Of a DNA stretch of 64,000 nt, positions 2,264-23,239 are shown in pieces (position 1 is the first letter of the stretch; every line of letters begins with the position of its first letter). Made by a program: the position numbers and the translations under genes. The stretch lies in the sequence record OZ196285.1; one strand, given 5' to 3'. The notes beneath the pieces are model-generated. The model was given only the letters and a program-made list of their open reading frames with translations. It was not told the DNA's origin and made no database searches.

Positions 2264-2557
2264 ATGAATTTCGAAAGAGCACTAGAAGCAATTAAAGACG
2301 GGCTGCGCGTGCAGCGTGAGGGTTGGAACGGTAAGGACATGTTTGTTGTTCAGATGCCGGCTCTATATCTGCCGCCATACAACACACAAGAACCCGGTCC
2401 TAAAGTGAACGACCGTACTGCTAAACACATCGGCGAAGATACGCCACTTGACTGTCAGCCGTATATCGCGTTGTTTACTCAAGACAAACTATGGCAACCT
2501 GGGTGGTTACCCTCTCAAGCAGATCTGTTTGCTGAAGACTGGGAAGTTTTAGATTAA
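2264..2557 (+). CDS. DUF2829 protein, Tad2-like (Thoeris anti-defence)
   Basis: MNF..AL..K.G..V.R.GWNGK.MF and GW.PSQ.D..AEDW motifs. Confidence 0.85.
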   Translation: MNFERALEAIKDGLRVQREGWNGKDMFVVQMPALYLPPYNTQEPGPKVNDRTAKHIGEDTPLDCQPYIALFTQDKLWQPGWLPSQADLFAEDWEVLD

Positions 2558-2559
2558 AA

Positions 2560-2599
2560 AAAAAGGCGTGAATCTGTAATATCAGGTTCACGCCTTTTT
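2560..2599. terminator. Bidirectional terminator
   Basis: A run, GGCGTGAA...TTCACGCC stem, T run; lies between convergent genes. Confidence 0.85.
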
Positions 2600-2612
2600 G
2601 TTGGTCACTACT

Positions 2613-3176
2613 TTACTGTTGGTCAGATAATTTCTCTACCCTAGCATCCAATTTTTCGATTTGCGCCTTTAGCATATCTGCTTCAGAACTCGTGAAACGG
2701 TCTTCGTTAACTGCGTCTAGGCGTGTGTTCACTCTCGCCAAGTCTGCTGCGAATTCACCGTCTTTCGCATTACGCGCATCGATTTTGATGCCTAATTCTC
2801 TCTGAGATTCATGCAGTGTGGCAATGTTGGCACGCAAACTTACGTCTGCTGCTGTAGTTGTCACACGAAGAGATTCAACACTTGTTTCTAGTTTGCCGTA
2901 TGAAGCAAGCAACTGATCTTGCTTATGTCCAATCGCTGCTTGTTGCCCTTCGAGTGAAATAAGCTGCTGCGCTTGCGTTGCATTGGTTAATTTAATGTCG
3001 CCAATCTCTTGCACGATTTTAGTGTTTAGCTCAATGGTGGTAGCGCCTTGGTCTTGTAAAACTACAAGAGCCTCTTGCATCCCACCATAGCTTGTCGCTA
3101 CACTCAATGAAGATATAGATAGAGGAATAAGAATCGTCCCTACAATTGCTAAAACGCCTTGCCAGAACTTTGTCAT
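2613..3176 (-). CDS. Membrane-anchored coiled-coil protein; candidate holin (T position) or i-spanin
   Basis: One N-terminal hydrophobic helix then a long coiled coil; own TATAAATA promoter; sits after the fibre genes and converges on asiA. Confidence 0.5.
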   Translation of the reverse strand: MTKFWQGVLAIVGTILIPLSISSLSVATSYGGMQEALVVLQDQGATTIELNTKIVQEIGDIKLTNATQAQQLISLEGQQAAIGHKQDQLLASYGKLETSVESLRVTTTAADVSLRANIATLHESQRELGIKIDARNAKDGEFAADLARVNTRLDAVNEDRFTSSEADMLKAQIEKLDARVEKLSDQQ

Positions 3177-3219
3177 AGTATTGGTTCCTATGTATTATTT
3201 ACTCTTATGTCTTCAAACG

Positions 3220-3227
3220 TATTTATA
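3220..3227 (-). promoter_or_regulatory. T4-type late promoter
   Basis: TATAAATA on the minus strand, overlapping the fibre stop codon. Confidence 0.75.
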
Positions 3228-6200
3228 AGCGGAAAAGTTTCTTCCACCACGGCTTTTTAAGCTCTTGTACTTCGTTCTGAAGCGTATTGACAGTTTCGTT
3301 AAGCTCTTTAATCGATTCGATTATAAGACCGCTTAGATTGCCGTACGCGACTGATTTGATGCCATCCGCGTCGTTATTATCGGCGCGAACCGCTTCAGGC
3401 AGAACTTTCTCAACTTCTTGAGCAATCACACCCGTTTCACGCGTTGTCTTGTCTTCGTGCAATGACAATTTCTTGTCGTAAACATACCCGCCAAGTTGCA
3501 TGATCTTCTCTAGTGGATTTTCGATGCGCTCGATGTTGCTTTTCAGGCGAATATCAGAGTAAGCAGTTACGTTGCCAGTTGCAGTAAAGTGCCCTGCATC
3601 ATCGAACGTAAATCGAGTCGTTGATCCGTCACGAACATACCAGTTACCAATACCGCTGTTCAAGTCAGTGTACATGTGAGAGCCATTACAGAAGAACTCG
3701 ACATCATCACTTGAACCGAAACGCATGATATCGTTATCAGCCAAATCGATTGCTGTACGAACACTCAACGTTCCATTAACCGTCATGCTACCAGTTATCG
3801 TACCGCCAGTTAGCGGTAAGTATCCCGCGCCTGACAGAGGAGCAAAACGCGCATCAGCTTCAGCTTCTGTGTAGTAACGACCATCATGTGTATGCGAATC
3901 GTTAGCAACTGCAACAGTGATCGAAGCGTTCGCTGAACCATCGAACAAGACTGAACCACTAGCATCACCTGCTAATGAAATCGTACGGGCTGTATTCAAC
4001 TTAGTTGCTGTTCCCGCATTTCCGTTCAGTGCACCTTGGAATGTGTTTGCTAACACCGTACCAGTAGACGCTTGAAATTTGAAACTAGAAGTGTCATACA
4101 AGGCGTTACTGTTGTTATGCCAAACTACAGGATAGAACGTAGATGACGTTGAGTTAGAAACAGTTACTTTGCTTGCAGCATCTAATATTCCAAGATATTT
4201 CGCACTCAGTGCAGTAGTACCCTCGTAAATCGAGTTCGCGTACAGTTGACTGAATCTCCATGTACTTGTACCTAGAGCACCCACCCCATTCGAATGTGGC
4301 AATAGGCCATCACTCGTTATACGCACATATGCAGTTGTTGAATTACTTCTACCGGTCATTTGACGATATGTACTTGAATCGTTAATGCCCATGTAATTGG
4401 TGTGCGCGTGACTATCGTTAGCAACAGTAACGGTCAGAGTTTTGTTAGCTGATCCGTCAATCGAAACTGAACCACTTACATCACCGTTAAGCGTGATCGT
4501 ACGAGCTGTTGTCCATTTATCAGCATTCGGATGATAGTTGTCTGCAAACAATCTTTCCCATGATGACCATGTCCCGTTATTTTGACCGCGAACATACCAA
4601 GCGTTGGTTCTCCAGTCACTTGCTTGCTGCGTCTGCCACGAAACACTATATGAGTTCGTTTGAATCGCGTGATCTTGTCCCGAAGGTGCGTTACTTGCAT
4701 CGGCTCCAAGATAACGAACTGAGAACCCGCCAACATCACCTACTGTGTCTGCGTTGACTGTTGATTTATCAGCCAAGAACGCATCAAATCTATCATGCGC
4801 GTGACTATCGTTAGCAACAGTAACGGTCAGAGTTTTATTAGCTGATCCGTCAATCGAAACTGAACCAGTCGCATCGCCACTTAACGTGATCGTACGAGCT
4901 GTTGTCCATTTATCAGCATTCGGATGATAGTTGTCTGCAAACACACGCTGTGTGTTGTTTGCATAAATCTCGCCCTCTGCATACGTTGCGTCGCGAGTAA
5001 CCCAGAAAGAACGTCGGTTGATAACATGACCAGTCGTATCACTCGCAGTTGAATGCAACACACTGAATGAATCATTATCGTCATTTGCAGAGATTACAAC
5101 CGCAGCATGACCGTTATCAGGGCCCCACAATGAAAGACAGTTGTTCGAACCTGGGATTAAACCATCGCCCGGGTTTGTGCTTCTGGTAATGTACGCGCCA
5201 GTATCGAATAGTAGCGAATTAACACCCAATATAAGCGAACCCGTCATTGTATCGCCTGATTTAGACACGTAGCGAGCGTTCGATTCTGCTTCTGTGTAGT
5301 AACGACCATCATGCGTGTGCGAATCGTTAGCAACAGTAACGGTCAGCGTTTTATTAGCTGATCCGTCAATCGAAACTGAACCACTTACATCACCGTTAAG
5401 CGTGATCGTACGAGCTGTTGTCCATTTATCAGCATTCGGATGATAGTTGTCTGCAAACACACGCTGTGTGTTGTTTGCATAAATGCTACCAGTCATGTAC
5501 ACGTTATTGCTTTCTCGTGCACCGCTCATTACAAGATGGTCGGCTCCCCCAGTTCTACGCCACAACTGCCAGTCGTTCACGTCACCATCATACTTCAAGA
5601 AAGCACCATGCTGTCCGCTATCTTCAGTCATACGCAATTCAGAATCGGTGTTTGCAGTTGCATTCAAGTGAAGTAATGAGTTTGCTTTAGTGATCGTCAG
5701 ATTACCCGTCATCGAATCACCAGACTTAGAAACGTATCCCGCACCATTAATAGGCGCGAATCGTGCATTAGCTTCTGCTTCTGTGTAGTAACGACCATCA
5801 TGAGTGTGCGAATCGTTCAGAACAACAACTTCTAGTGTTTCGTTTTCAGAACCATCGATTGAAACTGAACCAGTTGCATCGCCTGAAAGACTTAGTGTTC
5901 TTGCTGTTGTCCATCTATCCGCATTCGGATGGTATGTGTCGGTGAAGAACATGCGCCAGTCTGCCCATGTGCTTTCATCAGTCGCTACACGAGTGCCAAC
6001 GTTGCCGTTATCACCGAATGCGAATTGCAAACTACGACCACCACTCGATCCCTGCCATGCATCGAAGTTCATCACTCGGTGGTATGTGCCACCTCCATGA
6101 GTAAAGCCGTCAATCGTGTTGTACTTGAAGTGATACTCAACACCATCACCGTAGTCGCTTGGTAGATAATCAACACTTCGGCTATCTTTGCGCGGTAGAA

Positions 6201-7035
6201 CATCAGCTCCACCCGCCCCTTGACCAACTCTCATGTATCGAGTATCGTGCGTATGCGAATCGTTTACAACTGAAACGATCAGTGTTCGATTAGACGAACC
6301 ATCGATTGAAACTGAACCAGTCGCATCGCCACTTAACGTGATCGTACGAGCTGTTGTCCATTTATCAGCATTCGGATGATATGCATCGTGAAATACATCA
6401 TTGCCCTTGTACGTGATGCTCATCGCGTTCACGTCAAACGTCGAGCCATCACTACCGACACGAAATGCGTTGTCTGTTCGAACAACTGACGATCCGAAGT
6501 AAATACCGCTCGTGAAATCAAGCTGATCGTTGATTCTCAGCCATGCATCATATCCGCGCATAACAGTTTTATCGTTAATCGATAGATCATCGACGAACAA
6601 TTTAAACTCATTGCTGTACAGAGAAACACGCGTATTTGATGTACTACCTTCACGAAACGAAACGAACCCACCATCATTGACTAAAAACCAGTTTTGAGCA
6701 TTAGAGCCTGAGTTATCAGTCAGCGTTAGTCGTGGCGAGCTACCCTGTATTTCAATATCATTCGCAGCAACAGTCAATTTACCAGTCATCGTGTCACCAT
6801 CGCGCTTCATGTACCCCGATGGTACAGTATCAGCAAAACGCGTGTCTGCTTCTTCTCTGGTATATGCTGACGTACTGCCTCCGTTACCAAGCTCACTCGG
6901 TAACGGAGTGTCGTGTTCTGTGAAGATTTTATAGCCGCTGTAGCGAATTGTCTCGCCTTGTGTATCAAAGCGTAAATTCCCCCCATGCCATACTATGTTA
7001 CCGCCAATCGCAGTAGTTGACTTTAATTCTGCCAT
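3223..7035 (-). CDS. Long tail fibre with gp36-like N-terminus, six internal repeats and a C-terminal intramolecular chaperone (peptidase S74-like)
   Basis: N-terminus MAELKSTTAIGGNIVWHGGN resembles T4 gp36; repeated HPNADKWTTARTITL.GD..GSVSIDGS..NDSH.H; C-terminal YSDIRLKSNI...GVIAQEV...VAYGNL. Confidence 0.88.
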   Translation of the reverse strand: MAELKSTTAIGGNIVWHGGNLRFDTQGETIRYSGYKIFTEHDTPLPSELGNGGSTSAYTREEADTRFADTVPSGYMKRDGDTMTGKLTVAANDIEIQGSSPRLTLTDNSGSNAQNWFLVNDGGFVSFREGSTSNTRVSLYSNEFKLFVDDLSINDKTVMRGYDAWLRINDQLDFTSGIYFGSSVVRTDNAFRVGSDGSTFDVNAMSITYKGNDVFHDAYHPNADKWTTARTITLSGDATGSVSIDGSSNRTLIVSVVNDSHTHDTRYMRVGQGAGGADVLPRKDSRSVDYLPSDYGDGVEYHFKYNTIDGFTHGGGTYHRVMNFDAWQGSSGGRSLQFAFGDNGNVGTRVATDESTWADWRMFFTDTYHPNADRWTTARTLSLSGDATGSVSIDGSENETLEVVVLNDSHTHDGRYYTEAEANARFAPINGAGYVSKSGDSMTGNLTITKANSLLHLNATANTDSELRMTEDSGQHGAFLKYDGDVNDWQLWRRTGGADHLVMSGARESNNVYMTGSIYANNTQRVFADNYHPNADKWTTARTITLNGDVSGSVSIDGSANKTLTVTVANDSHTHDGRYYTEAESNARYVSKSGDTMTGSLILGVNSLLFDTGAYITRSTNPGDGLIPGSNNCLSLWGPDNGHAAVVISANDDNDSFSVLHSTASDTTGHVINRRSFWVTRDATYAEGEIYANNTQRVFADNYHPNADKWTTARTITLSGDATGSVSIDGSANKTLTVTVANDSHAHDRFDAFLADKSTVNADTVGDVGGFSVRYLGADASNAPSGQDHAIQTNSYSVSWQTQQASDWRTNAWYVRGQNNGTWSSWERLFADNYHPNADKWTTARTITLNGDVSGSVSIDGSANKTLTVTVANDSHAHTNYMGINDSSTYRQMTGRSNSTTAYVRITSDGLLPHSNGVGALGTSTWRFSQLYANSIYEGTTALSAKYLGILDAASKVTVSNSTSSTFYPVVWHNNSNALYDTSSFKFQASTGTVLANTFQGALNGNAGTATKLNTARTISLAGDASGSVLFDGSANASITVAVANDSHTHDGRYYTEAEADARFAPLSGAGYLPLTGGTITGSMTVNGTLSVRTAIDLADNDIMRFGSSDDVEFFCNGSHMYTDLNSGIGNWYVRDGSTTRFTFDDAGHFTATGNVTAYSDIRLKSNIERIENPLEKIMQLGGYVYDKKLSLHEDKTTRETGVIAQEVEKVLPEAVRADNNDADGIKSVAYGNLSGLIIESIKELNETVNTLQNEVQELKKPWWKKLFRL
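3501..3975. repeat. ~475-bp near-identical direct repeat, copy 1
   Basis: Matches 7372-7846 with few substitutions; encodes the fibre tip and start of the chaperone. Confidence 0.85.
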
Positions 7036-7064
7036 GTTTTTAATCTCATTTGTGCATTTACATG

Positions 7065-7071
7065 TATTTAG
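7065..7071 (-). promoter_or_regulatory. Late promoter variant CTAAATA
   Basis: About 30 nt upstream of the 7035 start; the same variant precedes several late genes. Confidence 0.65.
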
Positions 7072-7078
7072 CAGACAT

Positions 7079-7103
7079 AAAAAAAGCCCCGACGGGGCTT
7101 TTT
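7079..7103. terminator. Terminator after the 973-aa fibre
   Basis: AAAAAAAGCCCC-GAC-GGGGCTTTTT. Confidence 0.85.
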
Positions 7104-7105
7104 AG

Positions 7106-10027
7106 TTAATTAAACAGTTTACTGTATATTTTTTTGTACCACGGAGTTTCAAGTCGTTCAACTTTTTCATTAAGCTCCTTGATTGATTCTACTAACAAGC
7201 CAATCATGTTTCCGTAAGCTACAGATTTGATGCTATCGGGGTCGTTAGCGTCAACGTGTACCGCTTCAGGCAGAACTTTCTCAACTTCTTGAGCAATCAC
7301 ACCCGTTTCACGTCTCGTCTCGCTCTCGCTCATAGAACGCTTCTTATCGTACGTGTAGCCACTAAGCTGTTTGATCTTCTCTAGTGGATTTTCGATGCGC
7401 TCGATGTTGCTTTTCAGGCGAATATCAGAGTAAGCAGTTACGTTGCCAGTTGCAGTAAAGTGTCCTGCATCATCGAACGTAAATCGAGTTGTCGAACCGT
7501 CACGAACATACCAGTTACCGATGTCACTATTCAAGTCAGTGTACATGTGGGAGCCATTACAGAAGAACTCGACATCATCACTTGAACCGAAACGAAGAAT
7601 GTCATTATCTGCTAAGTCAATCGCAGTGCGAACACTCAACGTACCGTTCACCGTCATACTACCAGTTATCGTACCGCCAGTTAGCGATAAGTATCCCGCA
7701 CCGTTAATAGGTGCGAATCGTGCATCAGCTTCAGCTTCTGTGTAGTAACGACCATCATGTGTATGCGAATCGTTAGCAACTGCAACAGTGATCGAAGCGT
7801 TCGCTGAACCATCGAACGAGACTGAACCACTAGCATCACCTGCTAAACTGATTGTTCTTGCTGTTGCAAGCTTCGATGCGCTTGATGCGTTGCCAATGAA
7901 CGACGCTGCTGTTACCGATCCACGAAATTCCCAGTTGTTTGAGTTGTATTTGTTTCTAGCCGTCCAGTTATCATCAGAACCTGCTCGGTTAAACAGTGTG
8001 ATGTAGTCTGAGCCAGAGCCAGAGCCAGTCGGAGTACCGTCACCGTTGTACTCAAGACCACCACCATGAGTTGAAGACTGACCCACATAAATTCGACCAG
8101 TACCTTGCGACCCACCCATTGCTTGAATATTAGCCACGCCCGCATCGTCACAAATCACATTTAGTGTTGATGATGTGCCTGCATCGATAGTCATACTACC
8201 CGTCAGCGATCCACCCGTCAGCGGTAAGTATCCCGCACCATTAATAGGTGCGAATCGTGCATTAGCTTCTGCTTCTGTGTAGTAACGACCATCATGTGTA
8301 TGCGAATCGTTAGCAACTGCAACAGTCAAAGTCTTGTTCGCTGAACCATCAATTGAAACTGACCCACTAGCATCACCTGCTAAACTGATTGTTCTTGCTG
8401 TCGCCCATTTGCTTGCCGTCGTTGCGTTACCAGTCAATGCACCACTGAATTTTGTTGCAAAAACAGTCCCAGACGATCCTTCAAACTGAACACCAGTATG
8501 ACTATACATTAAGCCATTAACGTCAACAGTCATCGGGTATTTACCGCTGAACGTCGTTGTGATATCAACTCGATCTGCTAATGCTGCATGAGTTGCTTCG
8601 TTCACATCGACTGTGATACTCGCGTTAGCTGAACCGTCCCATGATACTGAGCCAGTTGCATCACCAGTAAGACTTAATGTTCTTGCAGTTGTCCATTTAT
8701 CAGCATTCGGGTGATAGTTGTCCATGAAAATACGCTGAGATGTTGCGTCGGACGTTGTATTACTCGTATTGTTTTTATACGCATAATGTAGTTTATCAAT
8801 GTTGCTAGTATCCGTCCATAATGAATGTCTGAACTTAGACCCCCCGTTATGACCCCACTGAATCCAGTTGATGAAATCATTACTAGGTGCCCCAGAAACA
8901 TTAGATGCCGACCCGGTTCTAAATTCGTCAGTTTGCGCGTTCCAGTCTGCGTTTAACGGGTCGATTCTAGTATGTAAGTGACTATCGTCTGCAACTACGA
9001 CATTGATACTTGCATTAGTTGATCCGTCAATCGAAACTGAACCACTAGCATCACCAGTAAGACTCAACGTTCTTGCAGTAGCCCATCGACTTGATGTTGA
9101 AGCATTACCACTTAATGCGCCGTATACCGTATTAATGTACGCACTACTAAACCTCCAAGAAGATGTACCCAAAACACTGCCACCAGAAGTGCCAGATTTA
9201 TAGGGAAGCAAACCGGATGCAGGTGTACAAATATAAGTATTTGCATTAGTCTTACCACGAATTTGATAATAAGACCCAGATGGGCTTAATGTATCACCCC
9301 GAGCATATCTAGTATCATGTGTATGGCTATCATTTGCAACTACAGTTGTAATCGTAGTAGTTTTATTCCCAGTGCCATCCACGCTCATTGATGCCGAACC
9401 CGTAACATCGCCCGTTAATGTAGTTGTTAATGTTCTCGCAGTCGTCCATTTATCAGCATTCGGGTGATAGTTGTCCGCAAACACGCGTTGCGTGCCACTT
9501 GCGTAGATGTTACCACCAACGACAATATGTAACGGGTGCGACGTTGAACTCGTGTCTTCGAAAAACAAGGCTTGACCCGACGTATTCGGCAGATTACCAT
9601 CAGTTATTTCGTGACGAATTCTCGCGTTCTGTGTTGAGTCGGATACGAAATTAATCGTTGCATCTATAGCTGTACTAGTCGATGTAAGCGACAAGAATGG
9701 AGAATTCCCGTATGCTTCAATTCCGTATTCAAGAACACGCAATTTGCTCCCTTTCAAGTCAAGAACGTTGCTTGAAGATGCATCGAAACGAGCGTCGTAA
9801 TCAGACGCGCCGCCTGAGATATGAAAGTCGATGTATCTACCGACTTCCATAACCCCGTTTGTTCCTATGACTGGAATCATTTCAGTATCTGGCGTTCCAT
9901 CAGTCCCGAAAAGACCGCCAGTCGCAACTACAGCACCGTTTAGCGTATTCAAGATCACATCGTTTAAAGACGTAACCCCTGTTACGTCTATACTACCGTA
10001 AACCGTAGTAGGGCCTAATTTAGCCAT
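7106..10027 (-). CDS. Distal tail fibre with five internal repeats and a C-terminal intramolecular chaperone
   Basis: Same repeat family and chaperone motifs as 3223-7035, but a different N-terminus. Confidence 0.88.
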   Translation of the reverse strand: MAKLGPTTVYGSIDVTGVTSLNDVILNTLNGAVVATGGLFGTDGTPDTEMIPVIGTNGVMEVGRYIDFHISGGASDYDARFDASSSNVLDLKGSKLRVLEYGIEAYGNSPFLSLTSTSTAIDATINFVSDSTQNARIRHEITDGNLPNTSGQALFFEDTSSTSHPLHIVVGGNIYASGTQRVFADNYHPNADKWTTARTLTTTLTGDVTGSASMSVDGTGNKTTTITTVVANDSHTHDTRYARGDTLSPSGSYYQIRGKTNANTYICTPASGLLPYKSGTSGGSVLGTSSWRFSSAYINTVYGALSGNASTSSRWATARTLSLTGDASGSVSIDGSTNASINVVVADDSHLHTRIDPLNADWNAQTDEFRTGSASNVSGAPSNDFINWIQWGHNGGSKFRHSLWTDTSNIDKLHYAYKNNTSNTTSDATSQRIFMDNYHPNADKWTTARTLSLTGDATGSVSWDGSANASITVDVNEATHAALADRVDITTTFSGKYPMTVDVNGLMYSHTGVQFEGSSGTVFATKFSGALTGNATTASKWATARTISLAGDASGSVSIDGSANKTLTVAVANDSHTHDGRYYTEAEANARFAPINGAGYLPLTGGSLTGSMTIDAGTSSTLNVICDDAGVANIQAMGGSQGTGRIYVGQSSTHGGGLEYNGDGTPTGSGSGSDYITLFNRAGSDDNWTARNKYNSNNWEFRGSVTAASFIGNASSASKLATARTISLAGDASGSVSFDGSANASITVAVANDSHTHDGRYYTEAEADARFAPINGAGYLSLTGGTITGSMTVNGTLSVRTAIDLADNDILRFGSSDDVEFFCNGSHMYTDLNSDIGNWYVRDGSTTRFTFDDAGHFTATGNVTAYSDIRLKSNIERIENPLEKIKQLSGYTYDKKRSMSESETRRETGVIAQEVEKVLPEAVHVDANDPDSIKSVAYGNMIGLLVESIKELNEKVERLETPWYKKIYSKLFN
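7372..7846. repeat. ~475-bp near-identical direct repeat, copy 2
   Basis: Matches 3501-3975. Confidence 0.85.
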
Positions 10028-10060
10028 ATATGTTTTCCCAATAAGTTATGTATAATGAGT

Positions 10061-10068
10061 TATTTATA
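10061..10068 (-). promoter_or_regulatory. T4-type late promoter
   Basis: TATAAATA upstream of 10027. Confidence 0.75.
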
Positions 10069-13000
10069 CCTCGTTGAACTCAAACGTGTTCGTAGACCCA
10101 TCAGATTTAATTCGCGTTGCATTGTTTTCATACTCACCTAGTGTGTTGTAACAACTGACAATAGGCGTATGTTCAGCGCCTGCACACAACTCGGCAATCG
10201 AGGGTTGAGTCCCATCCATCACATCAACTCGCGGTCTATGATAATTCTGAATCGTGTTCGCATCAGTAGAATAATACAAAAAGCTTCGATGTGTATTGCT
10301 CGTCGAGCCCGCCTTGCTGCGAAAGTTGGATGATATATTGCCAATCTTCTCGCCATTGACGTTGTATATGCCATAATCGGTATATGTGTTTGTGTCAGTC
10401 GTACCCGCTGCATACAAATAAGCAACGACTAAAAACCACTCGTTGCCATTTGGCAAATTACCAGACGATATAAAGTATGGGTTGGTATTTGCAGACCCAC
10501 TGAGATTTTCAGTATGCGACCCACTACACCCCAAATACCAACTACCGTTGCCCGTAACTTCTCGTTGAATCCAATTTGTATATCGATGATGCTTGGTAGA
10601 ATCAATCGCGACTGTCTGACCGTACCATCCACCATCACTACTGCTTGTCCCGCGAGTCATACCTTGCCATACAACATCATGGTCACCCCACGGATTTTTC
10701 TTTATAGTTATCAAATTCTCAATAGGATCAGATGTGCCGAATCCGCCATCATCACCGATAACCCACGTCGAATAGTCCAACAACGAAGGCTCAAAATTCG
10801 TTTCAATCAGCTCGCCTGCATGAACAACTCCGTCACGAGTAACACCCGTGTCGTGGTAGCCGCCGGTCACGAATCGCGAATTTGTGTAGTAAACAATCGA
10901 CCCGCTTTCGTTATATCGCCTTCCCTCTGCGAATTGAGACAGCAATTCACCGTTCTTGATGCCCATGAATCCCCACGTTCCGCGTGATGCAATTGCGTGA
11001 TCCTCAGTAACCCCAAAATACTTCAAGAATGTTTCTCTAAGTTGACCGTTCTGAGTCGTACTAGCATCACATCGAGCAGCAGTCATCAACCATCCATCTT
11101 CCATATTGTCCATTGCATGAATCAGCCAGTCAGCAGCTTCTTGAGCAGAGTCAGCGATATCATTTGCAGACGCAACATAAACAGTGCCGTCGAACTCATA
11201 ATACTGAGTAGTCGTGCCCGAATATGTATCCAACGAACCGTAGCCGCGCAACGTCATGCTTTCGTCGTAAATACAGAAGCTAATGCCGCGACTACTAGAC
11301 TGATAACCTTGCTTAACGCCATTGATAAACGTACCGGTATTTCCTGATGAGCTACTGCGAATTTCGATTTCTAAATCGCCATCGCTATCCCAACCCTCAA
11401 CGAACTCAGACGCACAAAAAACACCCGTTTCAACAACAGACGCTCGGACTCTAGACAAACGATTGATCTTCTCTGCTGATAGCTCTGACGCATATACTCG
11501 AACATCAGATACGTGACCCTCATTCATCTTGCGATATTCGTAGCTACCACTAGCACCCGCATCGTAATTGATCATTAGTCGATACGCAGCGCCCGGGTTG
11601 GTATTTACGTTCTCGCCAGTTCCTTCAAGAACGCCATCGACGTATGTTTTGTAAACGCCATCAGCGTACGACATTGCAAGGTGATGCCAAACGCCATCAG
11701 AGACTTGACTCGTGCCCGTTGCAACTTGCTTGTCTGTACCAGTCGAGCTATCACCATACAAATGACATGCTAGTACGCCCCCTTCGATTTGCATCGAATT
11801 TAGAACATTGTTACCGGTTCTACCACCAAACAATAAGAATACAGCCGAATCGGTAGTTTTTACCCACAACGAGCGAGTAAACGCAGGCAATGTTGCTAGA
11901 TAGTCGTTCTTGAACTTAATTGAGTTGAAATGTCCATCAGCAGACGGTCGAATGTAATAACCACTGGCACCAACTGCTGCATCAGAACTCCATCCAGCGG
12001 TTGTCGAATCAAGATACGCATCGTTGCCATACCCCGAACGGTCGTAGACCGCATCAGATTGTATGTCTTGTGGTTCACGTGCCAACGTATCAGACTGAAC
12101 AGCAACAGAACGAGCAAATTTGTACCAGTATGAATTCCCATCACTCGCACCCCCAATTCGCGATGTCAATTTCAAAATATCAGACGAATCAGTCGTGCGA
12201 TGTGACTGAAACATGTATCCTGTTTTCGTTATGAATTCTTTCGTTCCTGATTTGGTTCCGTCACCAACACCCTCATTTTGATACGAAATGAAGTACAAAT
12301 GATCGCGATATGAGGGATCATTTGTGGCGATCAATTCTACACCAAATGTATATGGTGTATCTGATTTCATATCAGTCACATTGAGCGAGTTCGTGTACCA
12401 GCTACCCACATCACCTGTCGTAGTTACAGTAAACGTACCATCGTCATTATTCACAACAGAATTGCGATAATGATTCCCACTAGCGTGTCCATCGCTCAGA
12501 TTCAATCCGAACAGTGGAGCACCGCTCAGATGAACAATTTTCGCGTCTAAAATTTCATCCAATTCGAGGTCTGTGATGCAATGATCGTAAATTCGAACAT
12601 CATTCATTTTTCCATTAGGGCGATAACTCGAACTCGAACTATTCGTTACAGACCAGTTGAACAACTCAAGATATTCTTCAGTATATGCAAACGACGAATA
12701 CGGCTGAGTTTTTTCGATTACCCCGTCAACGAGAAGTTCAAGTTTTGTGCCGTCATAACGATAAGTTAAGTGACGCCACGCCCCGCGCAAATCACTAGTT
12801 CCGTAATAAGCGTTGTATGTTCGACCTGTACCACTCCCCGTGCTACACCCTATGTAAATCTCGCTACTATTGGTTCGCTTCATTAACCCAAGGCATGGGT
12901 TCGAATTCGCGACGTGATTATGTAGAGTTACCAGCCCATTCGCAGTATTCGTATGAGCACTACCTCCACTATAGAACCACGCTGTCATTGTAAATTCTTT

Positions 13001-13192
13001 AGTAAGCAAGATCTTATTATCAGAACGGAGCAAATCTACGGTATTGTATGTAATTCTTTCATGACAACGACCGATTTTACCGCCAGTCGCTGAAGCGATA
13101 TTAGCCTCGCTCCCGACTAATGACAAGTGGTTTGCATTCCCACTTTTATCGTGTAAGTCCCCGTCTAGTGGGTACCATGCTATTAATGACAT
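10064..13192 (-). CDS. Tail-fibre-associated lectin: two LamG/ConA-like domains, an ILEI/GG-like domain and a C-terminal beta-sandwich
   Basis: AWYPLDGD..DKSGN, W.HL.......LYVDG and D.R.Y motifs twice; central RGI.F..YD...FDTY...WGF.GIKNG segment. Confidence 0.75.
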   Translation of the reverse strand: MSLIAWYPLDGDLHDKSGNANHLSLVGSEANIASATGGKIGRCHERITYNTVDLLRSDNKILLTKEFTMTAWFYSGGSAHTNTANGLVTLHNHVANSNPCLGLMKRTNSSEIYIGCSTGSGTGRTYNAYYGTSDLRGAWRHLTYRYDGTKLELLVDGVIEKTQPYSSFAYTEEYLELFNWSVTNSSSSSYRPNGKMNDVRIYDHCITDLELDEILDAKIVHLSGAPLFGLNLSDGHASGNHYRNSVVNNDDGTFTVTTTGDVGSWYTNSLNVTDMKSDTPYTFGVELIATNDPSYRDHLYFISYQNEGVGDGTKSGTKEFITKTGYMFQSHRTTDSSDILKLTSRIGGASDGNSYWYKFARSVAVQSDTLAREPQDIQSDAVYDRSGYGNDAYLDSTTAGWSSDAAVGASGYYIRPSADGHFNSIKFKNDYLATLPAFTRSLWVKTTDSAVFLLFGGRTGNNVLNSMQIEGGVLACHLYGDSSTGTDKQVATGTSQVSDGVWHHLAMSYADGVYKTYVDGVLEGTGENVNTNPGAAYRLMINYDAGASGSYEYRKMNEGHVSDVRVYASELSAEKINRLSRVRASVVETGVFCASEFVEGWDSDGDLEIEIRSSSSGNTGTFINGVKQGYQSSSRGISFCIYDESMTLRGYGSLDTYSGTTTQYYEFDGTVYVASANDIADSAQEAADWLIHAMDNMEDGWLMTAARCDASTTQNGQLRETFLKYFGVTEDHAIASRGTWGFMGIKNGELLSQFAEGRRYNESGSIVYYTNSRFVTGGYHDTGVTRDGVVHAGELIETNFEPSLLDYSTWVIGDDGGFGTSDPIENLITIKKNPWGDHDVVWQGMTRGTSSSDGGWYGQTVAIDSTKHHRYTNWIQREVTGNGSWYLGCSGSHTENLSGSANTNPYFISSGNLPNGNEWFLVVAYLYAAGTTDTNTYTDYGIYNVNGEKIGNISSNFRSKAGSTSNTHRSFLYYSTDANTIQNYHRPRVDVMDGTQPSIAELCAGAEHTPIVSCYNTLGEYENNATRIKSDGSTNTFEFNEV

Positions 13193-13203
13193 TGTTTACC
13201 GCC

Positions 13204-14844
13204 TTATGCGAAAATAAAATCGATTGATTTAGATGTCGAATTGTATTCAATCGTTGCAGCCCCATCGTCGAAGTTCATTTCAGAACGACCATCGTGTTGC
13301 ATAGGGCTGCCGTTGTATGTTACTGCGTCGGCTGAACTTGCACTCGTTGTTGAGTCAATACGCAGTGTGTTTTTAGAACCTGCGCCTGCACGCAACTCGA
13401 TTCCTTCAGTTGCACCAGTCCCGTCTAAGTCAGCTTGAATGATCACACTTGCGTTCGACTGCAACGTAGGTGATGAATTACCACCCATCAGATTCAAAAA
13501 GTATCCGATTGACGAACCAACGATAGAGTTAGTACCAATCGTCAAGTTACCAGTCATCGAATCACCAGTCGCATTCACATAACGGCTGTCTAGCTTCGAC
13601 GTGTAGTTACCCATGTGGATAAGATCGTGACCGTTGAACTCAACTCCGTTAATGTCCGTCCCTCCGCCGCGAACGCGCAACGTGTTCAGACCTGCTTTTA
13701 GATTTAAGTATCGTGTTGCTTCGTTATCATTAGAATCGGCTTCAATTGTGATATCACCGACCGATTGCATATCAATCGACGTGGTATTGAATTTCAGATT
13801 ATACGATGCATTCGAACCCTCAAGACCATGACCGACTTCAAACCGAATATCAGTGCCTTTCATGTCAAGGTCGCCTGCGGTAGTGAATTCCCAGTTGTCA
13901 CCACTCACTTTATTACCACGAAACGCAACTAATGAACTATCATCCCCATCCCCGATGTAAATCGTATCTGAGTATATGTATGTAGTCGGTGCGCCTGACT
14001 GAATGTAAAAATTACCGCCAGTGAATGCTGTTCGACCATCAGAGTCTGTATAGAAATACCCGTTGCCTTTATCGCCAAGATAAACTCTAGGCGCGACCAG
14101 CGCAGTGTCAGAACTCACGTCCCCGTCGAACGATGCTGCACCGTTGCCTAAATTAAATTCAATTCGCGATATATCAAGGTCGCGGTCGATGAATCGCAGC
14201 AGCTTAGAAACGCTGTAGTCAATACCTGCGATGTATGCAGAGTTTTGAAATTGCAATTCAGATGAGTAAGACGTACCATTATCTTGCAGAACTATGTCAT
14301 CAGTAAATATAACTTTACCAGAGAACGTGTTATCGCCATCAGTACCTGCATAACGCGAGTCAAGATACGTCGTATAGTTGCCAGTATGAAGCATTTTGCT
14401 CGTAGATGAACCGTCGTAATAATCGAAATTACCGTCATGATCGAATTTCCACGATTTATTCGAATTAGTCGATTGAATCATGAACTCATTGCCGTCAGTC
14501 CCTGACGTACTACCCAGATATGTCAAATTCCATGCATACGTAGAATTACCCATGCGAATCCACGCATCAGTGCCACCAAGAGTGTCGCCACTGCCATCAG
14601 ATACGCCACCATCAATTGACAACGCAAGTCCTGTTTTGTTTAGATGCAGCGGGCCGCTCATCGAATCGCCTGCGCGTTTAACAACAGATTCAGTCAAGCC
14701 GGTATGCGGGTCTGGTTTGTCGTTCTCAGTGTAAATTTTATAGCCGTCGTAACGAATCGAATCGCCCTGTGGATCGAAACGTAAATTCCCTCCGTGCCAT
14801 ACTATGTTACCGCCAATCGCGGTAGTTGACTTTAATTCTGCCAT
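13204..14844 (-). CDS. gp36-like proximal fibre or hinge connector
   Basis: First 24 aa identical to the 1270-aa fibre; GD.M.G.L motifs; C-terminal IEYNSTSKSIDFIFA. Confidence 0.8.
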   Translation of the reverse strand: MAELKSTTAIGGNIVWHGGNLRFDPQGDSIRYDGYKIYTENDKPDPHTGLTESVVKRAGDSMSGPLHLNKTGLALSIDGGVSDGSGDTLGGTDAWIRMGNSTYAWNLTYLGSTSGTDGNEFMIQSTNSNKSWKFDHDGNFDYYDGSSTSKMLHTGNYTTYLDSRYAGTDGDNTFSGKVIFTDDIVLQDNGTSYSSELQFQNSAYIAGIDYSVSKLLRFIDRDLDISRIEFNLGNGAASFDGDVSSDTALVAPRVYLGDKGNGYFYTDSDGRTAFTGGNFYIQSGAPTTYIYSDTIYIGDGDDSSLVAFRGNKVSGDNWEFTTAGDLDMKGTDIRFEVGHGLEGSNASYNLKFNTTSIDMQSVGDITIEADSNDNEATRYLNLKAGLNTLRVRGGGTDINGVEFNGHDLIHMGNYTSKLDSRYVNATGDSMTGNLTIGTNSIVGSSIGYFLNLMGGNSSPTLQSNASVIIQADLDGTGATEGIELRAGAGSKNTLRIDSTTSASSADAVTYNGSPMQHDGRSEMNFDDGAATIEYNSTSKSIDFIFA

Positions 14845-14883
14845 TGAAAAATTCCCAATTTATGAAAATAAGATATATGACAG

Positions 14884-14890
14884 TATTTAG
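14884..14890 (-). promoter_or_regulatory. Late promoter variant CTAAATA
   Basis: Upstream of 14844. Confidence 0.6.
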
Positions 14891-14898
14891 TATAGCCG

Positions 14899-14922
14899 AA
14901 AAAAAGGACGCCTTAGCGTCCT
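14899..14922 (-). terminator. Rho-independent terminator
   Basis: AGGACGC-loop-GCGTCCT followed by a T run on the minus strand. Confidence 0.75.
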
Positions 14923-15443
14923 TTAGTTTTTTTATATTTCGCTTTCTTATTCTTTCGATTAATCTTGCGAACTTCTTTTCGTTTAGCGATTTTATCAGCT
15001 CTTCGCACTGCATCGTAATCAGCAGCACAAGACGCTGCAAACGCATCAGGCTTGAATACAGGCTCCTGACCTACATAACCCAAGATCGTGCCCTTAGCTT
15101 CGTTATACGCAATGCTAGACTTATGTTTCGGGTCAGGATTGATATCGACGTGAACTTCAAAGCCACGAGGACCGCACATTGGCTTAACGCGCAACGCACA
15201 TTCACCTGCTTTGTAGACTTCATTCATTAGACGACTGCGAATACCGTCAGTCGCGTTCATGTATGCAGGTTCAGTTTCAACCATCTTGAAGACTTGAGCA
15301 CCTTTACTGCCTTCCAAGTGAATTATGATTACAGTCGCATAACTGATTAAATCACTCTTTCGCTTACTGTCACATCCGACATAAATCGTGCTGCTCGGGT
15401 GACTATTGCATATCGCTGTTTCTATTGCTTCCCAATCAAACAT
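14913..15443 (-). CDS. RNase H-like protein, YkuK/DUF458 family
   Basis: IYVGCDS, YATVI..H...GA, RLMNEV, EVHVDIN...KS and AASCAAD motifs; basic C-terminal tail. Confidence 0.85.
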   Translation of the reverse strand: MFDWEAIETAICNSHPSSTIYVGCDSKRKSDLISYATVIIIHLEGSKGAQVFKMVETEPAYMNATDGIRSRLMNEVYKAGECALRVKPMCGPRGFEVHVDINPDPKHKSSIAYNEAKGTILGYVGQEPVFKPDAFAASCAADYDAVRRADKIAKRKEVRKINRKNKKAKYKKTKGR

Positions 15444-15455
15444 TGTTCACCTCAC

Positions 15456-15478
15456 AAAAAAGGCGGCATGAAGCCGCC
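15456..15478 (-). terminator. Terminator between the DUF2828 and RNase H-like genes
   Basis: GGCGGC-TTCAT-GCCGCC-TTTTT on the minus strand. Confidence 0.7.
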
Positions 15479-15487
15479 CCATTCTAG

Positions 15488-16936
15488 TTATACTGCGTAC
15501 CGGTCGATACCAACAGTCTTCATCATGATCTTCACTGGCTCAAGCTCGCCATCAAGTAAAGAAGTCAGGATAGATGGACTACAACCCGACACAAGTGCCG
15601 TACCTGCCTCACCCGTTTTCACTGGTACGTTGTCTAGACGACCGCGAATGTTCCAGAACGCTAGTTGCGGCATTTCGTAGCCCGCTGCTGCGTATTGAGC
15701 TTTGATAGCATCAAAGTTTGTTTCTGTGCGGCTTGGCCAACCACCACCGCATTTCGCAGTGTTGAATTCCATGTCAGACATGATCAACATCTTCGTAGGC
15801 ATTTCAGATTGTGGCAAGTTTGCACGCTGCGCACGCTCCAATAGCACTTCGAAACACTTCTGAATATCAGTGCTCATGTTCTCACCAGAACGACGCATGT
15901 TAGCAAGACGCGTTGACAGTGTATCACCAACAAGCTTGTGGAAATGTGGATCGCCTGAGAACGAAATGAACTGATCTTTGAAGATACCTTCGTTACGTTC
16001 AGCTACGTAGACACCAAGAGACATCGCTACGTCCATACAAGTTGTAACAGTGCCCTGTGAATAGCAGCTACCTTGTTCTGAGTTAATCGCACAATTCATT
16101 GAGCCAGACACATCAACAACAGGGATGATGCGCTCGTCAGACCCTTCCATGTAATTCGGAAGTGCTTTCCATTGCTGATCTGCTACACGTGAATCGCCCA
16201 TTCGTACGCTGCGAACAACGTCGTAAGGGAAGACTGCACCTGCATTGATCTTAGCTTCGCCTTTCTCAAGCTTGTTGATGTACTCACCGTAGTTCTCAGC
16301 CGCGTTACGACCGAATGCTTTCTGATAACGCGCAGACGCTACAGATGGCAACTTACCGAAGTCGATCTCGTTCCAGTTCTGTGAACACATTTTCTGTTCA
16401 ACAGTGTCAGACAGCGTAGAAATGACCTTACGCCATTGCTTCGATGTCACGCCAAGCGCCTTGATAGTGCGCTTAAACACGATACCGTTTTTACTCTTCT
16501 CACGAGGGAACCACTTCGCAGCCAGTGCGTTTTTGCCGTTCACGATTGCATTTGCCCATAGAGCAATTGCATCAGACTCAAGAGGAGTACCGAACGCAGT
16601 CACTAAGTCATCGAAACGACCTAATTCTGGCACCTTGTGCATTACAGCACGTGCAACGTCAGGGTTTTTCGCGATAAGTTCAGCGAAAATGCGACGGAAA
16701 GTACCGCGCTCACCTGCACCACCGCGCACGTCGCGAGACCATAGCAAGATACGTGTTGCTAGTTCAGGGTTTTCACCGTATGCGCGATTGAACGCATGTA
16801 CTGAATCTTTGTTACCGCGCATTGCTGCTACAGTAAAGAACAAGTTCAGACACTCGTTACCCGAAGTGCTGTGTGTAATTGCACCGTTTGCTGTACGTGC
16901 GTCGTTTGTGCTCATTGCGTTCATAAATGCTGACAT
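15488..16936 (-). CDS. DUF2828 TROVE-like/vWA protein (Ro60-related RNA-binding protein)
   Basis: T.NGA..H..S, RDVRGGAGER, GRFDDL, AAKW.PR and SVA..RY.KAF motifs; vWA MIDAS VVDVSGSM and MSDMEF. Start moved to 16936 (SD GAGGA). Confidence 0.9.
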   Translation of the reverse strand: MSAFMNAMSTNDARTANGAITHSTSGNECLNLFFTVAAMRGNKDSVHAFNRAYGENPELATRILLWSRDVRGGAGERGTFRRIFAELIAKNPDVARAVMHKVPELGRFDDLVTAFGTPLESDAIALWANAIVNGKNALAAKWFPREKSKNGIVFKRTIKALGVTSKQWRKVISTLSDTVEQKMCSQNWNEIDFGKLPSVASARYQKAFGRNAAENYGEYINKLEKGEAKINAGAVFPYDVVRSVRMGDSRVADQQWKALPNYMEGSDERIIPVVDVSGSMNCAINSEQGSCYSQGTVTTCMDVAMSLGVYVAERNEGIFKDQFISFSGDPHFHKLVGDTLSTRLANMRRSGENMSTDIQKCFEVLLERAQRANLPQSEMPTKMLIMSDMEFNTAKCGGGWPSRTETNFDAIKAQYAAAGYEMPQLAFWNIRGRLDNVPVKTGEAGTALVSGCSPSILTSLLDGELEPVKIMMKTVGIDRYAV

Positions 16937-16984
16937 TGTGTATTTCCTCTTAAATAATATGCTGTAAAATGTCTTATGCGTTGT

Positions 16985-17013
16985 ATTATACACACGTTTT
17001 TACGAGTGTAAAC
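16985..17013 (-). promoter_or_regulatory. Early promoter of the DUF2828 gene
   Basis: GTTTAC-17 bp-TATAAT, the T4 early consensus. Confidence 0.8.
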
Positions 17014-21967: not shown

Positions 21968-22081
21968 TCATGCTTCTTTCTCTTCGTTTGAGGTTAGTAT
22001 TAGATGAACTTGTTCGTAAACTTCTTGCTCAATCAGCCATTGTTCGTAAACGTAGTCTGCATACAAAAGTGTTTCGTACAT
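21968..22081 (-). CDS. 37-aa acidic small protein (not in the ORF track)
   Basis: SD AGGTGA; MYETLLYADYVYEQWLIEQEVYEQVHLILTSNEEKEA. Confidence 0.45.
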   Translation of the reverse strand: MYETLLYADYVYEQWLIEQEVYEQVHLILTSNEEKEA

Positions 22082-22101
22082 ACTTCACCTATTTTAAAAT
22101 G

Positions 22102-22178
22102 TGGTGGTGACTCTGAGGTTCGAACTCAGTACCAGCGGCGTATGAAACCACGACTTTACCATCATAAGCTAAGTCACC
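22102..22178 (-). tRNA. tRNA-Met(CAT), elongator-like
   Basis: Cloverleaf, loop TTCATAC, CCA. Confidence 0.85.
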
Positions 22179-22321
22179 AAAGACGATATTTCTCATTTAA
22201 TCTGCACACGGGCTAGACACCATATTTTAATGGTCTGAGTGAAGAACCTCTGCACAACAATCCCGATCTAATTGCGTTATGTGGTGACTGTCACGAGGAA
22301 TCGTATCTTCAAATTAGTATC

Positions 22322-22530
22322 AGGCAATCGCGAAATGTTTTATCGTCTTTTGCATAAATCGCTATTGACTATCTTGTGTATTCTGTACAAGAACATATCA
22401 CATTTTCGCAAGTGAGGCTATCATATCATCACTGATATGCACGTCTTGTAATGCTTGAAGTGACACGTTTCCGCTCACCCGCACCAAGAGCCATCTTTGA
22501 GTTAGAAAGATTAGTTGCAGTACATTGCCT
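22322..22530 (-). ncRNA. ~210-nt multi-hairpin RNA carrying the CWGCAA motif (element B)
   Basis: Closing helix AGGCAAT/ATTGCCT, then GTA-CTGCAAC as in element A; at least five internal hairpins. Confidence 0.6.
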
Positions 22531-22573
22531 AGCGCACGTTTTAGCCGAAGCAAACGTGAACTCTAATTATGTG

Positions 22574-22649
22574 TGGCACGCCATATAAGATTCGAACTTA
22601 TAACCCCGAATTTAGAAGATTCGTGCTCTTCCAATTGAGCTAATAGCGC
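22574..22649 (-). tRNA. tRNA-Arg(TCT)
   Basis: Cloverleaf, CCA. Confidence 0.93.
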
Positions 22650-22726
22650 ATCATTAAGAATCGAACCATAAGATCTTGTGACACGATGGTAGTAAAGAGA
22701 GTGTCTATCTCATGTGTTCGAAAATT

Positions 22727-22801
22727 TGGTGGACCGTAAGGGACTCGAACCCTTAACTCCGCCTTGCAAGGGCAGTGTATTCCCACTTATACTAACAGCC
22801 C
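22727..22801 (-). tRNA. tRNA-Ala(TGC)
   Basis: Cloverleaf, G3:U70, CCA. Confidence 0.95.
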
Positions 22802-22807
22802 AAATTG

Positions 22808-23017: not shown

Positions 23018-23041
23018 TATATATTCCAAAGTTGTAAAAAA

Positions 23042-23116: not shown

Positions 23117-23119
23117 GTT

Positions 23120-23233: not shown

Positions 23234-23239
23234 GGTATC

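Follow-up and report, generated by a model that had tools for sequence, protein, structure and literature searches.

Vibrio phage F86 probably encodes two paralogous distal halves of a T4-type long tail fibre, both built into virions and one of them a jointed chain of three proteins, a reading to which we assign a probability of about 0.6. The sequences, their conservation and the selection acting on them, the layout of promoters and terminators, the domain folds and the presence of orthologues in virions are shown by the analysis; docking on gp35, the order within the chain and the monomeric state of its connector are what we infer.

In the proposed arrangement, an adaptor common to both routes would dock, by homology with T4 gp36, on an enlarged 892-aa gp35-like hinge. 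Route B would be a single 1270-aa polypeptide comprising the adaptor, a shaft of gp36-type repeats, a tip and a self-cleaving S74 chaperone. Route A would begin with a 546-aa protein, consisting of the adaptor and a short shaft and ending in ...EYNSxxxSIDFIFA; its C-terminal plug would be taken up by a probably monomeric, lectin-like connector of 1042 aa that starts MSLIAWYPL, and this in turn would carry a 973-aa fibre (start MAKLGPTT..G) with tip and chaperone as in B. Each route would be made in every infection from a late-type promoter behind a terminator, with no genetic switch. Particles would thus carry two fibre geometries with nearly one tip in F86, and the three lectin-like domains of route A could bind surface glycans.

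Gene layout, promoters and terminators

The window analysed here, 64,000 nt in length, is the right end of the genome of F86 (OZ196285.1), a T4-like phage and Schizotequatrovirus outgroup. It holds the four open reading frames of 546, 1042, 973 and 1270 aa, all on the minus strand (Table 1). Direct repeats are abundant throughout the genes of this region. Genes 34 and 35, correctly placed outside the window by the original prediction, were found at record positions 22,035-28,393 of OZ196285.1, about 145 kb from the distal fibre genes.

Table 1. Features of the distal fibre region of F86 (window positions)
Feature	Position	Strand	Description
Gene A (546 aa)	13204..14844	-	gp36-type N-terminal adaptor (aa 1-~70), shaft, C-terminal plug ...IEYNSTSKSIDFIFA
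Connector or 'hub' (1042 aa)	10064..13192	-	two LamG, alpha/beta middle domain, CBM-like jelly roll
Gene T (973 aa)	7106..10027	-	N-terminal peptide MAKLGPTTVYGSIDVTG, gp36-type repeats, distal tip, S74 chaperone
Gene B (1270 aa)	3223..7035	-	adaptor, five PF03903 repeat stretches, tip, S74 chaperone
Adaptor-coding DNA of gene A	14718..14844	-	direct-repeat family D9, 86% nt identity to 6909-7035
Tip and chaperone segment of B	3294..3975	-	in common with T segment 7165-7846
Tip and chaperone segment of T	7165..7846	-	counterpart of B segment 3294-3975
Late-promoter-like box CTAAATAC before gene A	14883..14890	-	just 3' of terminator hairpin
Terminator hairpin upstream of gene A	about 14897-14924	-	
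Late promoter box TATAAATA before gene T	10061..10068	-	overlaps connector stop codon
Intrinsic terminator hairpin after gene T	7081..7103	-	10-bp stem, T run
Late-promoter-like box CTAAATAC before gene B	7064..7071	-	

Gene B had been predicted to have its own late promoter behind a terminator. The terminator is there; the promoter can be called late-promoter-like, as its box agrees with the T4 consensus TATAAATA at 6 of 8 positions. Across the window, CTAAATAC shows no enrichment, with 4 occurrences against 1.8 expected. Relatives have CATAAATA where F86 has CTAAATAC before B. Gene A has a terminator and a box, also with 6/8 consensus positions, arranged as for B, a layout that the original prediction had left unmentioned. 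In F86, 6E35.1a, ValKK3 and nt-1 alike, A and B are each preceded by a terminator and, after it, an (A/T)TAAATA box. The box before gene T is a canonical T4-type late box, with an ATAAATA core at the matching position in 6E35.1a and ValKK3. Both routes, having late-type promoters of their own, are expected in every infection. The further suggestion that the fibres could be switchable found no support: inverted repeats, such as flank the alternative fibre 3' parts in the Mu G and P1 C segment switches, are absent from positions 2500-15500 at lengths of 25 nt or more, and all the genes lie on one strand with promoter-like boxes of their own. We rejected an invertible or phase-variable switch for want of inverted repeats in this interval.

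A gp36-type adaptor shared by A and B

Residues 1-24 of A and B are identical (MAELKSTTAIGGNIVWHGGNLRFD), as had been noticed at the outset, and the whole F86 genome has only two copies of this adaptor motif, one in each gene. Their likeness to gp36 is also confirmed. The N-termini of A and B match phrog_1425 (gp36 'hinge connector distal') at E 3e-14 and 1.5e-10, respectively, the match on A spanning aa 1-148, and tblastn searches with them retrieve the N-termini of annotated gp36 genes from T-even-type phages in their hundreds, with 36-53% identity across 44-69 aa. T6 gp36 is 42% identical to the adaptor over 45 aa (alignment A3, with 14 invariant columns when T6 gp36 is included), and the pattern of the gp36 docking segment (MA.LK....GG..W H.GN...) is found in both A and B. 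Sequence searches of the PDB, run with A, the connector, the gp35-like protein and a profile of the adaptor, yielded no useful match and no gp35 or gp36 structure.

The DNA encoding the adaptor differs between A and B at 5 synonymous and 0 non-synonymous positions over 72 nt in F86, and at 11 synonymous and 0 non-synonymous positions in 6E35.1a; within individual genomes, pS between the two copies is 0.33-0.58, and 0-3 of 27 residues differ. Because synonymous sites have diverged and the residues are nearly unchanged, the two N-termini are best read as old paralogues under strong purifying selection for one shared partner, and the diverged synonymous sites rule out recent gene conversion as the source of their identity in the family. 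In F86, with a pS of 0.33 and K5 in either copy, conversion may have contributed to a limited degree. KVP40-type phages are classic broad-host-range vibriophages and figure in aquaculture phage work. The A and B paralogues are kept in 4/4 phages of the KVP40 group studied in detail, a comparison set made up of relatives of KVP40, and this retention, together with the purifying selection on the adaptor, upholds the proposal of two distal routes with a common gp36-type attachment end.

The putative docking partner (P0006) is encoded outside the window, directly downstream of gp34. Its residues 347-528 match phrog_1154 (gp35; E 1.2e-12) and residues 350-690 align with T6 gp35 at 23% identity; at 892 aa, versus 371 aa in T6, it has extra blocks (aa 1-345 and 690-892) around the gp35 core. 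We rejected the idea that an extra hinge domain explains the presence of two fibres. Neither the LPCS28 nor the T6 gp35 has a match to the CBM-like domain, and Cronobacter phage LPCS28 has two gp36-type fibres together with a 501-aa gp35 lacking it, so the domain is not required for two fibres.

Published virion proteomics of a relative, 6E35.1a, bears on whether both routes reach the particle. All four orthologues are listed in its virions (PMC12028318, Table S4), so that the refuting outcome named beforehand, a single gp36-like protein in virions with the other unexpressed, did not occur. Spectral counts in two replicates were 259/365 for B, 50/60 for T, 52/52 for the connector, 49/77 for A, 70/140 for the gp35-like protein and 134/235 for gp34, numbers that are semi-quantitative, refer to 6E35.1a rather than F86 and are inflated for B by its internal repeats. 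Taken per kDa and against gp34, the counts put A, T and B at about 0.7-0.8, 0.6-0.9 and 2.1-2.6, respectively. The connector, whose count per kDa is at most about half that of A or T, departs in the direction expected of a monomer joining trimers, though short of 1:3. The same paper (ISME J 2025) places the orthologues among seven candidate receptor-binding proteins of Schizotequatrovirus, in a recombination hotspot of the genus, and reports that F86 adsorption uses OmpK; in the part of it available to us, the OmpK-binding protein is not assigned, with no reliable model obtained, and the same genes are treated with no description of a shared adaptor, two routes or a connector chain. Nor did the literature searched contain a description of a distal fibre of three proteins with a lectin-like connector.

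The connector and the two distal ends

The shaft of A belongs to no Pfam family, but the protein matches phrog_23453 at E 3e-141, and its C-terminal plug contains SIDF.F, invariant in 7 homologues. The connector gene begins 11 nt past gene A and has no promoter of its own. Its product contains two LamG stretches (Pfam PF13385, E 2.8e-28), and a structure model (pLDDT 80 overall, >90 for aa 1-222) resolves LamG domains at aa 1-222 and aa 420-576, an alpha/beta middle domain and a CBM-like jelly roll at aa 780-1010; the C-terminal domain is modelled at pLDDT 88 and resembles CBM4/16/61-type folds with Z 10-11. Foldseek returned LamG and neurexin-type matches, and the likeness of the full model to clostridial neurotoxin binding domains and neurexins was set aside as generic to jelly rolls (query TM about 0.15).

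The domain at the C-terminus of the connector is homologous to the extension that the gp35-like hinge carries at its own C-terminus (hhalign 91.5%, E 8e-7; 65.6% with single sequences); this common domain is a generic CBM-like jelly roll and may bind sugars instead of fibres. The C-terminal strand of gp34 (T6 ...KTVKFEWVE; F86 ...VLEFTFGHAI) resembles the plug of A-type segments. As wholes, A and gp34, like the connector and the gp35-like protein, gave nothing significant in BLASTP. A match of phrog_972 to A (aa 314-445, E 2e-7) was discarded as evidence on docking because it sits in a shaft module that is absent from F86 gp34.

The serial order of route A is supported by phage nt-1 and by more distant genomes. 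The connector occurs in single copy, as part of the four-gene module, in 31 Vibrio phage records, and route A consists of three proteins in F86 and 30 other records; 6E35.1a and ValKK3 have the full module. Phage nt-1 lacks a connector homologue and instead carries a pair of gp36+37 fusion genes; in one of them an A-type adaptor, with 73-88% identity over aa 1-77, is fused straight to a T-type body and chaperone. Contig L022, whose connector is 34% identical, shows the same succession of junctions: ...EYNSATDSIDFIFA*, then MSLI..., then MARLGSTTILGS. In another contig, the gene for a 751-aa protein is followed by one for a LamG protein and then by an S74 fibre gene. In the distant metagenomic phage contig L023, three pairs of fibre segment and LamG connector follow one another, with like junction peptides and an S74 fibre last, and these serial pairs support A, connector and T as one jointed fibre. 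The chain of 546-aa protein, connector and 973-aa protein put forward originally therefore draws support from junction peptides in distant contigs and from the nt-1 fusion.

At the distal end, B has five stretches of PF03903 repeats (E 6e-54) and matches phrog_11011 with a score of 1118, and T has gp36-type repeats of the form YHPNADKWTTART...NDSHTHD. A relationship between the N-terminus of T and that of gp36 was rejected as not significant (hhalign probability 7% over 11 columns). Intermediates in L022 and L023 hint at a continuum from T-type to gp36-type N-termini. Both proteins end in a Peptidase_S74 domain (PF13884; aa 867-924 of T, E 6e-19; aa 1160-1217 of B, E 4e-17) with the cleavage motif (Y)SD.R.K, here YSDIRLK, at T 866 and B 1159 and predicted cleavage before S867 and S1160, respectively. 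In F86, the final 140 aa ahead of this site are 95.7% identical between B and T, and the tip and chaperone segments align without gaps at 86.4% nt identity; the 139 codons ahead of the cleavage site give dN 0.026 and dS 0.38. The original prediction had not noticed this common distal tip. Elsewhere the two tips are 39% identical (6E35.1a) or have no similarity (nt-1). The wider host range that had been suggested is thus doubtful for F86 itself, because its tips are nearly identical.

Alternative arrangements and known systems

Branched fibres, in which each hinge would bear both halves and all six long fibres would fork, with A-connector-T as one arm and B as the other, are less likely than a mixture of fibres but a serious alternative. 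The additional N- and C-terminal blocks of the hinge speak for them, as does the per-kDa sum of A, T and B over gp34 in the 6E35.1a table (PMC12028318), which is far above the 1:1 expected for one half per gp34 trimer; spectral counts, however, are not stoichiometry, and repeat peptides inflate the count of B. Branching has a precedent in the T5-like phages DT57C and DT571/2 (as cited in PMC9569957), but LPCS28 manages two fibres with a gp35 that lacks the extra CBM-like domain, and identical adaptors suit competition for a single site no less than occupation of two.

That the connector is no joint at all seems improbable. The 546-aa protein would then be a stand-alone distal stub, the connector and the 973-aa fibre would sit on the baseplate, collar or whiskers, and the gene order would reflect co-regulation. 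Generic sugar-binding folds in the connector, the canonical late promoter of T and an N-terminus of T that is not significantly gp36-like agree with this, but it leaves aside the recurrence of the fibre-connector-fibre order and the three terminal peptides in very distant contigs, three times in L023, the joint loss in nt-1 of the connector and the body of A, with the A adaptor fused to a T-type fibre, and the start of the connector gene 11 nt after A with no promoter of its own. We give very little credence to redundancy, that is, to routes equivalent in F86, one a recombination reservoir and one alone mattering for infection: the 95.7% identity of the tips, the genus-wide recombination hotspot (PMC12028318) and the wealth of direct repeats would suit it, yet purifying selection on both shared ends at dS about 0.4 means that both genes were long kept functional, both orthologues are abundant in the 6E35.1a virions listed in that paper, and the tips differ in relatives.

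The preferred reading, of two distal halves with one of them jointed, departs from the T4/T6 fibre (gp34-gp35-gp36-gp37) in several respects. Both systems have gp34, a gp35 homologue, PF03903 repeats and the gp36-homologous N-terminal 45 aa. T4 and T6, however, have one gp36, F86 two gp36-type proteins; gp36 of T4 is a separate protein of about 220 aa (216 aa in T6) whose C-terminus joins gp37, whereas A has 546 aa and B is a fusion that includes the gp37 part; T4 has no lectin-like connector, whereas F86 has one after A; and folding that depends on gp38 and gp57A there is replaced by S74 chaperone tips in F86, which also differs in its long gp35 and in the distance of genes 34 and 35 from the distal genes. 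A member of Mylasvirus, Vibrio phage nt-1, shares the genomic position, the A/B adaptor paralogues, the terminator and promoter layout and a conserved downstream 190-aa membrane protein. Its two fibre genes are adjacent and both carry the label 'gp36+37 fusion long tail fiber distal subunit'; its route A is one 1187-aa polypeptide, and its two tips are unrelated.

We tentatively suggest that LamG connectors form a widespread, undescribed class of 'joint' proteins that would string trimeric segments together through three terminal peptides, generalizing the gp34-gp35-gp36 hinge to a modular set of parts for fibres with several joints or with branches. The peptides would be, at a similarly cautious level, ...YN....ID.xF at the C-terminus of a segment, MSLxxW.PL on the connector and MAxL..T...G on the next segment. 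If so, F86 has one joint and L023 three in series, and the common adaptor lets the two F86 assemblies compete for or share one hinge; the conserved junction peptides suggest that the T4 hinge may exemplify a connector system of wider occurrence. The junction peptides would offer a simple sequence rule for predicting fibre-protein partners in unannotated phage genomes, and two distal half-fibres on one adaptor type can guide the choice of gene-deletion combinations for finding the receptor-binding parts, with both F86 routes having nearly one tip and one of them adding a three-domain lectin-like joint.

Two fibre proteins with different distal parts per virion also occur in the T5-like phages DT57C and DT571/2 (LtfA/LtfB) and in Shigella phage Sf14, which belong to other phage families, differ in attachment chemistry and have neither a gp36-type adaptor nor a LamG connector. 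Both proteins of the branched lateral fibres of DT57C and DT571/2 are said to have S74-type C-terminal chaperones, and Sf14 reportedly carries two long tail fibres.

Two fibre routes on one gp36-type adaptor

The proteins A and B of Vibrio phage F86 begin with the same gp36-type N-terminus, hereafter the adaptor. Our analysis confirms and extends what the original prediction observed of this shared end, from which two fibre routes would start: route A, consisting of A, a LamG-containing connector and the protein T, and route B, consisting of B alone. The first 24 residues are identical, similarity runs to around residue 45, and the F86 genome contains only these two copies. Their proposed likeness to gp36 also holds: the N-terminus matches phrog_1425 (E values of 3e-14 and 1.5e-10), tblastn with the adaptor reaches annotated gp36 genes throughout the T-even-like phages at their N-terminal ends, and an alignment that includes T6 gp36 has 14 invariant columns and 42% identity to it over 45 aa.

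Features of the F86 fibre module and compared loci. Coordinates are those of the window unless marked; window position 1 is position 164,384 of record OZ196285.1 (228,383 bp), to which megablast aligns window 3223–14844 with 100% identity. Counts are virion spectral counts of the 6E35.1a orthologue in two replicates, from PMC12028318.
Feature	Coordinates	Strand	Length	Counts	Remarks
A	13204–14844	-	546 aa	49 / 77	
Connector	10064–13192	-	1042 aa	52 / 52	
T	7106–10027	-	973 aa	50 / 60	
B	3223–7035	-	1270 aa	259 / 365	
Membrane and coiled-coil protein	2613–3176	-	187 aa		directly after B
TATAAATA box of the 187-aa gene	3220–3227				canonical
Direct-repeat units in B and T	3770–9520		138–177 nt		9 and more diverged units, spacing 393–537 nt
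Genes 5′ of the fibre module	14913–16993		176 and 501 aa		DUF458-type; Ro60-like DUF2828
gp34	record 24722–28393		1223 aa	134 / 235	
gp35 homologue	record 22035–24713 (L017:1501–4176)		892 aa	70 / 140	T6: 371 aa
L023 fibre array	1452–12819 of contig				phage; ENA ERZ27234999, k141_1219833
LPCS28 tandem distal fibres	6389–11292 of OM638103.1 (L025)		851 and 763 aa		Nanhuvirus

Within a genome, the first 27 codons of A and B differ at 0–3 residues with pS of 0.33–0.58, and in most comparisons of synonymous sites orthologues are closer than paralogues, F86 B being an exception. Because synonymous sites have diverged while residues are nearly unchanged, A and B are old paralogues whose identity is held by purifying selection, as would be expected if both adaptors must fit one partner. 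We infer that the adaptor docks on gp35. Genes 34 and 35, correctly described as absent from the window, are adjacent at record 22,035–28,393.

Pfam scans identified an S74 chaperone (a C-terminal chaperone with predicted self-cleavage) in both B and T, together with PF03903 (gp36) repeats in five stretches of B and two of T; the connector has two LamG domains, and A matched no family. Of the terminator and late promoter assigned to B, the terminator is clear and the promoter box, CTAAATAC, agrees with TATAAATA at 6 of 8 positions. Exactly this arrangement also precedes A, and canonical TATAAATA boxes precede T and the 187-aa gene, signals that the original prediction had missed. In each of the four phages compared (F86 and the related Vibrio phages 6E35.1a, ValKK3 and nt-1), a terminator and (A/T)TAAATA lie before A and again before B.

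The four genes occur in identical order in 6E35.1a and ValKK3, and 31 Vibrio phage records contain the connector, always in one copy. The same locus of nt-1 has two genes labelled ‘gp36+37 fusion’ in GenBank, which shows that these fusions were already known to annotators; the first places an A-type adaptor (73–88% identity to A proteins, aa 1–77) on a T-type repeat body and chaperone. A search of nt-1 for a connector homologue found none. Paired gp36-type distal fibres also exist outside vibriophages, since Cronobacter phage LPCS28 encodes gp34, gp35 and then two fibres with near-identical gp36-type N-termini (MALLKSGSTVGGNLIWHQG...), the second gene having a terminator and TATAAATA 5′ of its start. 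A 60-nt direct repeat lies 5′ of the first.

PMC12028318, a 2025 study of Schizotequatrovirus phages with F86 as their outgroup, names these proteins among candidate RBPs and as components of the virion. Full-text literature searches turned up no account of the shared adaptor, of two alternative routes or of the connector chain.

Route A as a proposed serial chain, and the enlarged hinge

Four lines of evidence support A–connector–T as a serial chain, an order that we infer. The connector starts 11 nt past A without a promoter of its own. Unlike in F86, the A body, connector and T N-terminus are all missing together in nt-1. In the distant metagenomic contig L022, the junction peptides are kept though the connector is only 34% identical: the preceding fibre ends ...EYNSATDSIDFIFA, the connector begins MSLI... 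and the next fibre begins MARLGSTTILGS. Finally, contig L023, whose genes are readable only if TAG is translated as glutamine (TAG=Q), alternates three short fibre segments with three LamG connectors and ends in an S74 fibre. All its segments start MA(Q/L)L(K/N)... (the two middle ones MA(Q/L)LKST.V.GNL), all those followed by a connector end in ...(Q)Y(N/D)....(I/V)(D/E/K)..F, and all connectors start MSL..WLP. In a further contig, a 751-aa protein is followed by a LamG protein and then by an S74 fibre.

Compared with the gp36 type (MAELKSTTAIGGN) and with the T type (MAKLGPTTVYGSI), the L023 N-termini are intermediate; direct profile comparison of these two types gave no significant similarity. 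The gp34 C-termini (T6 ...KTVKFEWVE; F86 ...VLEFTFGHAI) look like plugs, the conserved C-terminal peptides of A-type segments, and the T6 gp35 end ...EFREV resembles the F86 connector end ...EFNEV. We regard these short sequence likenesses as leads.

A full HMMER scan with the connector, cut off at E 0.001, returned 3,927 relatives. The N-terminal LamG domain almost always keeps its N-terminal position; the C-terminal domain (aa 780–1010) is shuffled into many architectures. The AlphaFold model of the connector has four domains (pLDDT 80), and the C-terminal domain modelled alone (pLDDT 88) is a predicted CBM-like jelly roll matching CBM4, CBM16 and CBM61 at Z 10–11, as well as phage baseplate and fibre proteins. 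These predicted folds are consistent with the earlier label of lectin hub.

In the F86 gp35 homologue, extra blocks flank both sides of a T6-gp35-like core (aa 350–690). The N-terminal block (345 aa) has a weak CBM_4_9 match and the C-terminal block (200 aa) is CBM-like. By hhalign, the connector C-terminal domain is homologous to aa 716–872 of this hinge (91.5%, E 8e-7 when profiles are compared; 65.6% when a single sequence is used), and the CBM-like domain was not found in gp35 of T6 or LPCS28. Near its C-terminus, F86 gp34 carries one gp36-type repeat (WETARTVTFSGDLTGSVSFDGSSNVTASVQVNNNSHAH) at a site where the gp34 family profile has another module; that module is present in A (aa 314–445).

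Shared tip, virion presence and recombination

The C-terminal 250 aa of B, as had gone unnoticed, are common to T, the DNA being 86.4% identical over 682 gapless nt. Over the 139 codons that lead up to the predicted S74 cleavage site (YSDIRLK), dN is 0.026 and dS 0.38, and protein identity over the 140 aa ahead of it is 95.7%. Because both of its ends are shared, B amounts to A’s adaptor and T’s tip on a different shaft. Elsewhere the tips of the two routes diverge, with 39% identity in 6E35.1a and no relationship in nt-1. F86, whose two routes end in one tip, is therefore unusual. The near-identical tips weaken the proposal that the routes widen host range, which is doubtful for F86.

According to PMC12028318 (Table S4), virions of 6E35.1a contain all four orthologues, gp34 and the gp35-like protein. 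Both gp36-like proteins, rather than a single one, are thus present in this relative. The core of the interpretation, namely that one adaptor serves two routes and that both routes are structural, is right. Normalized per kDa, A and T are about as abundant as gp34, the connector reaches about half of A and T or less, and B reaches 2–2.6 times gp34, in counts that are semi-quantitative and include repeated peptides within B. They cannot separate mixed from branched fibres.

Switchable fibres, also proposed, are unsupported: the fibre region is rich in direct repeats (gp36-type units, the shared adaptor and the shared tip), and no inverted repeat of at least 25 nt was found there. The direct repeats are consistent with the recombination hotspot reported for the region in PMC12028318, for which the repeat units of B and T are likely substrates; they would permit deletions and swaps without reversible switching.

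The 187-aa protein (phrog_15749, function unknown) combines a transmembrane helix at its N-terminus with a long coiled coil, and its gene is conserved at the same place in 6E35.1a and nt-1. It is probably non-structural, since its 6E35.1a orthologue had only 2 spectral counts in virions, and could be holin-like or a fibre-assembly factor, its position matching T4 genes 38 and t.
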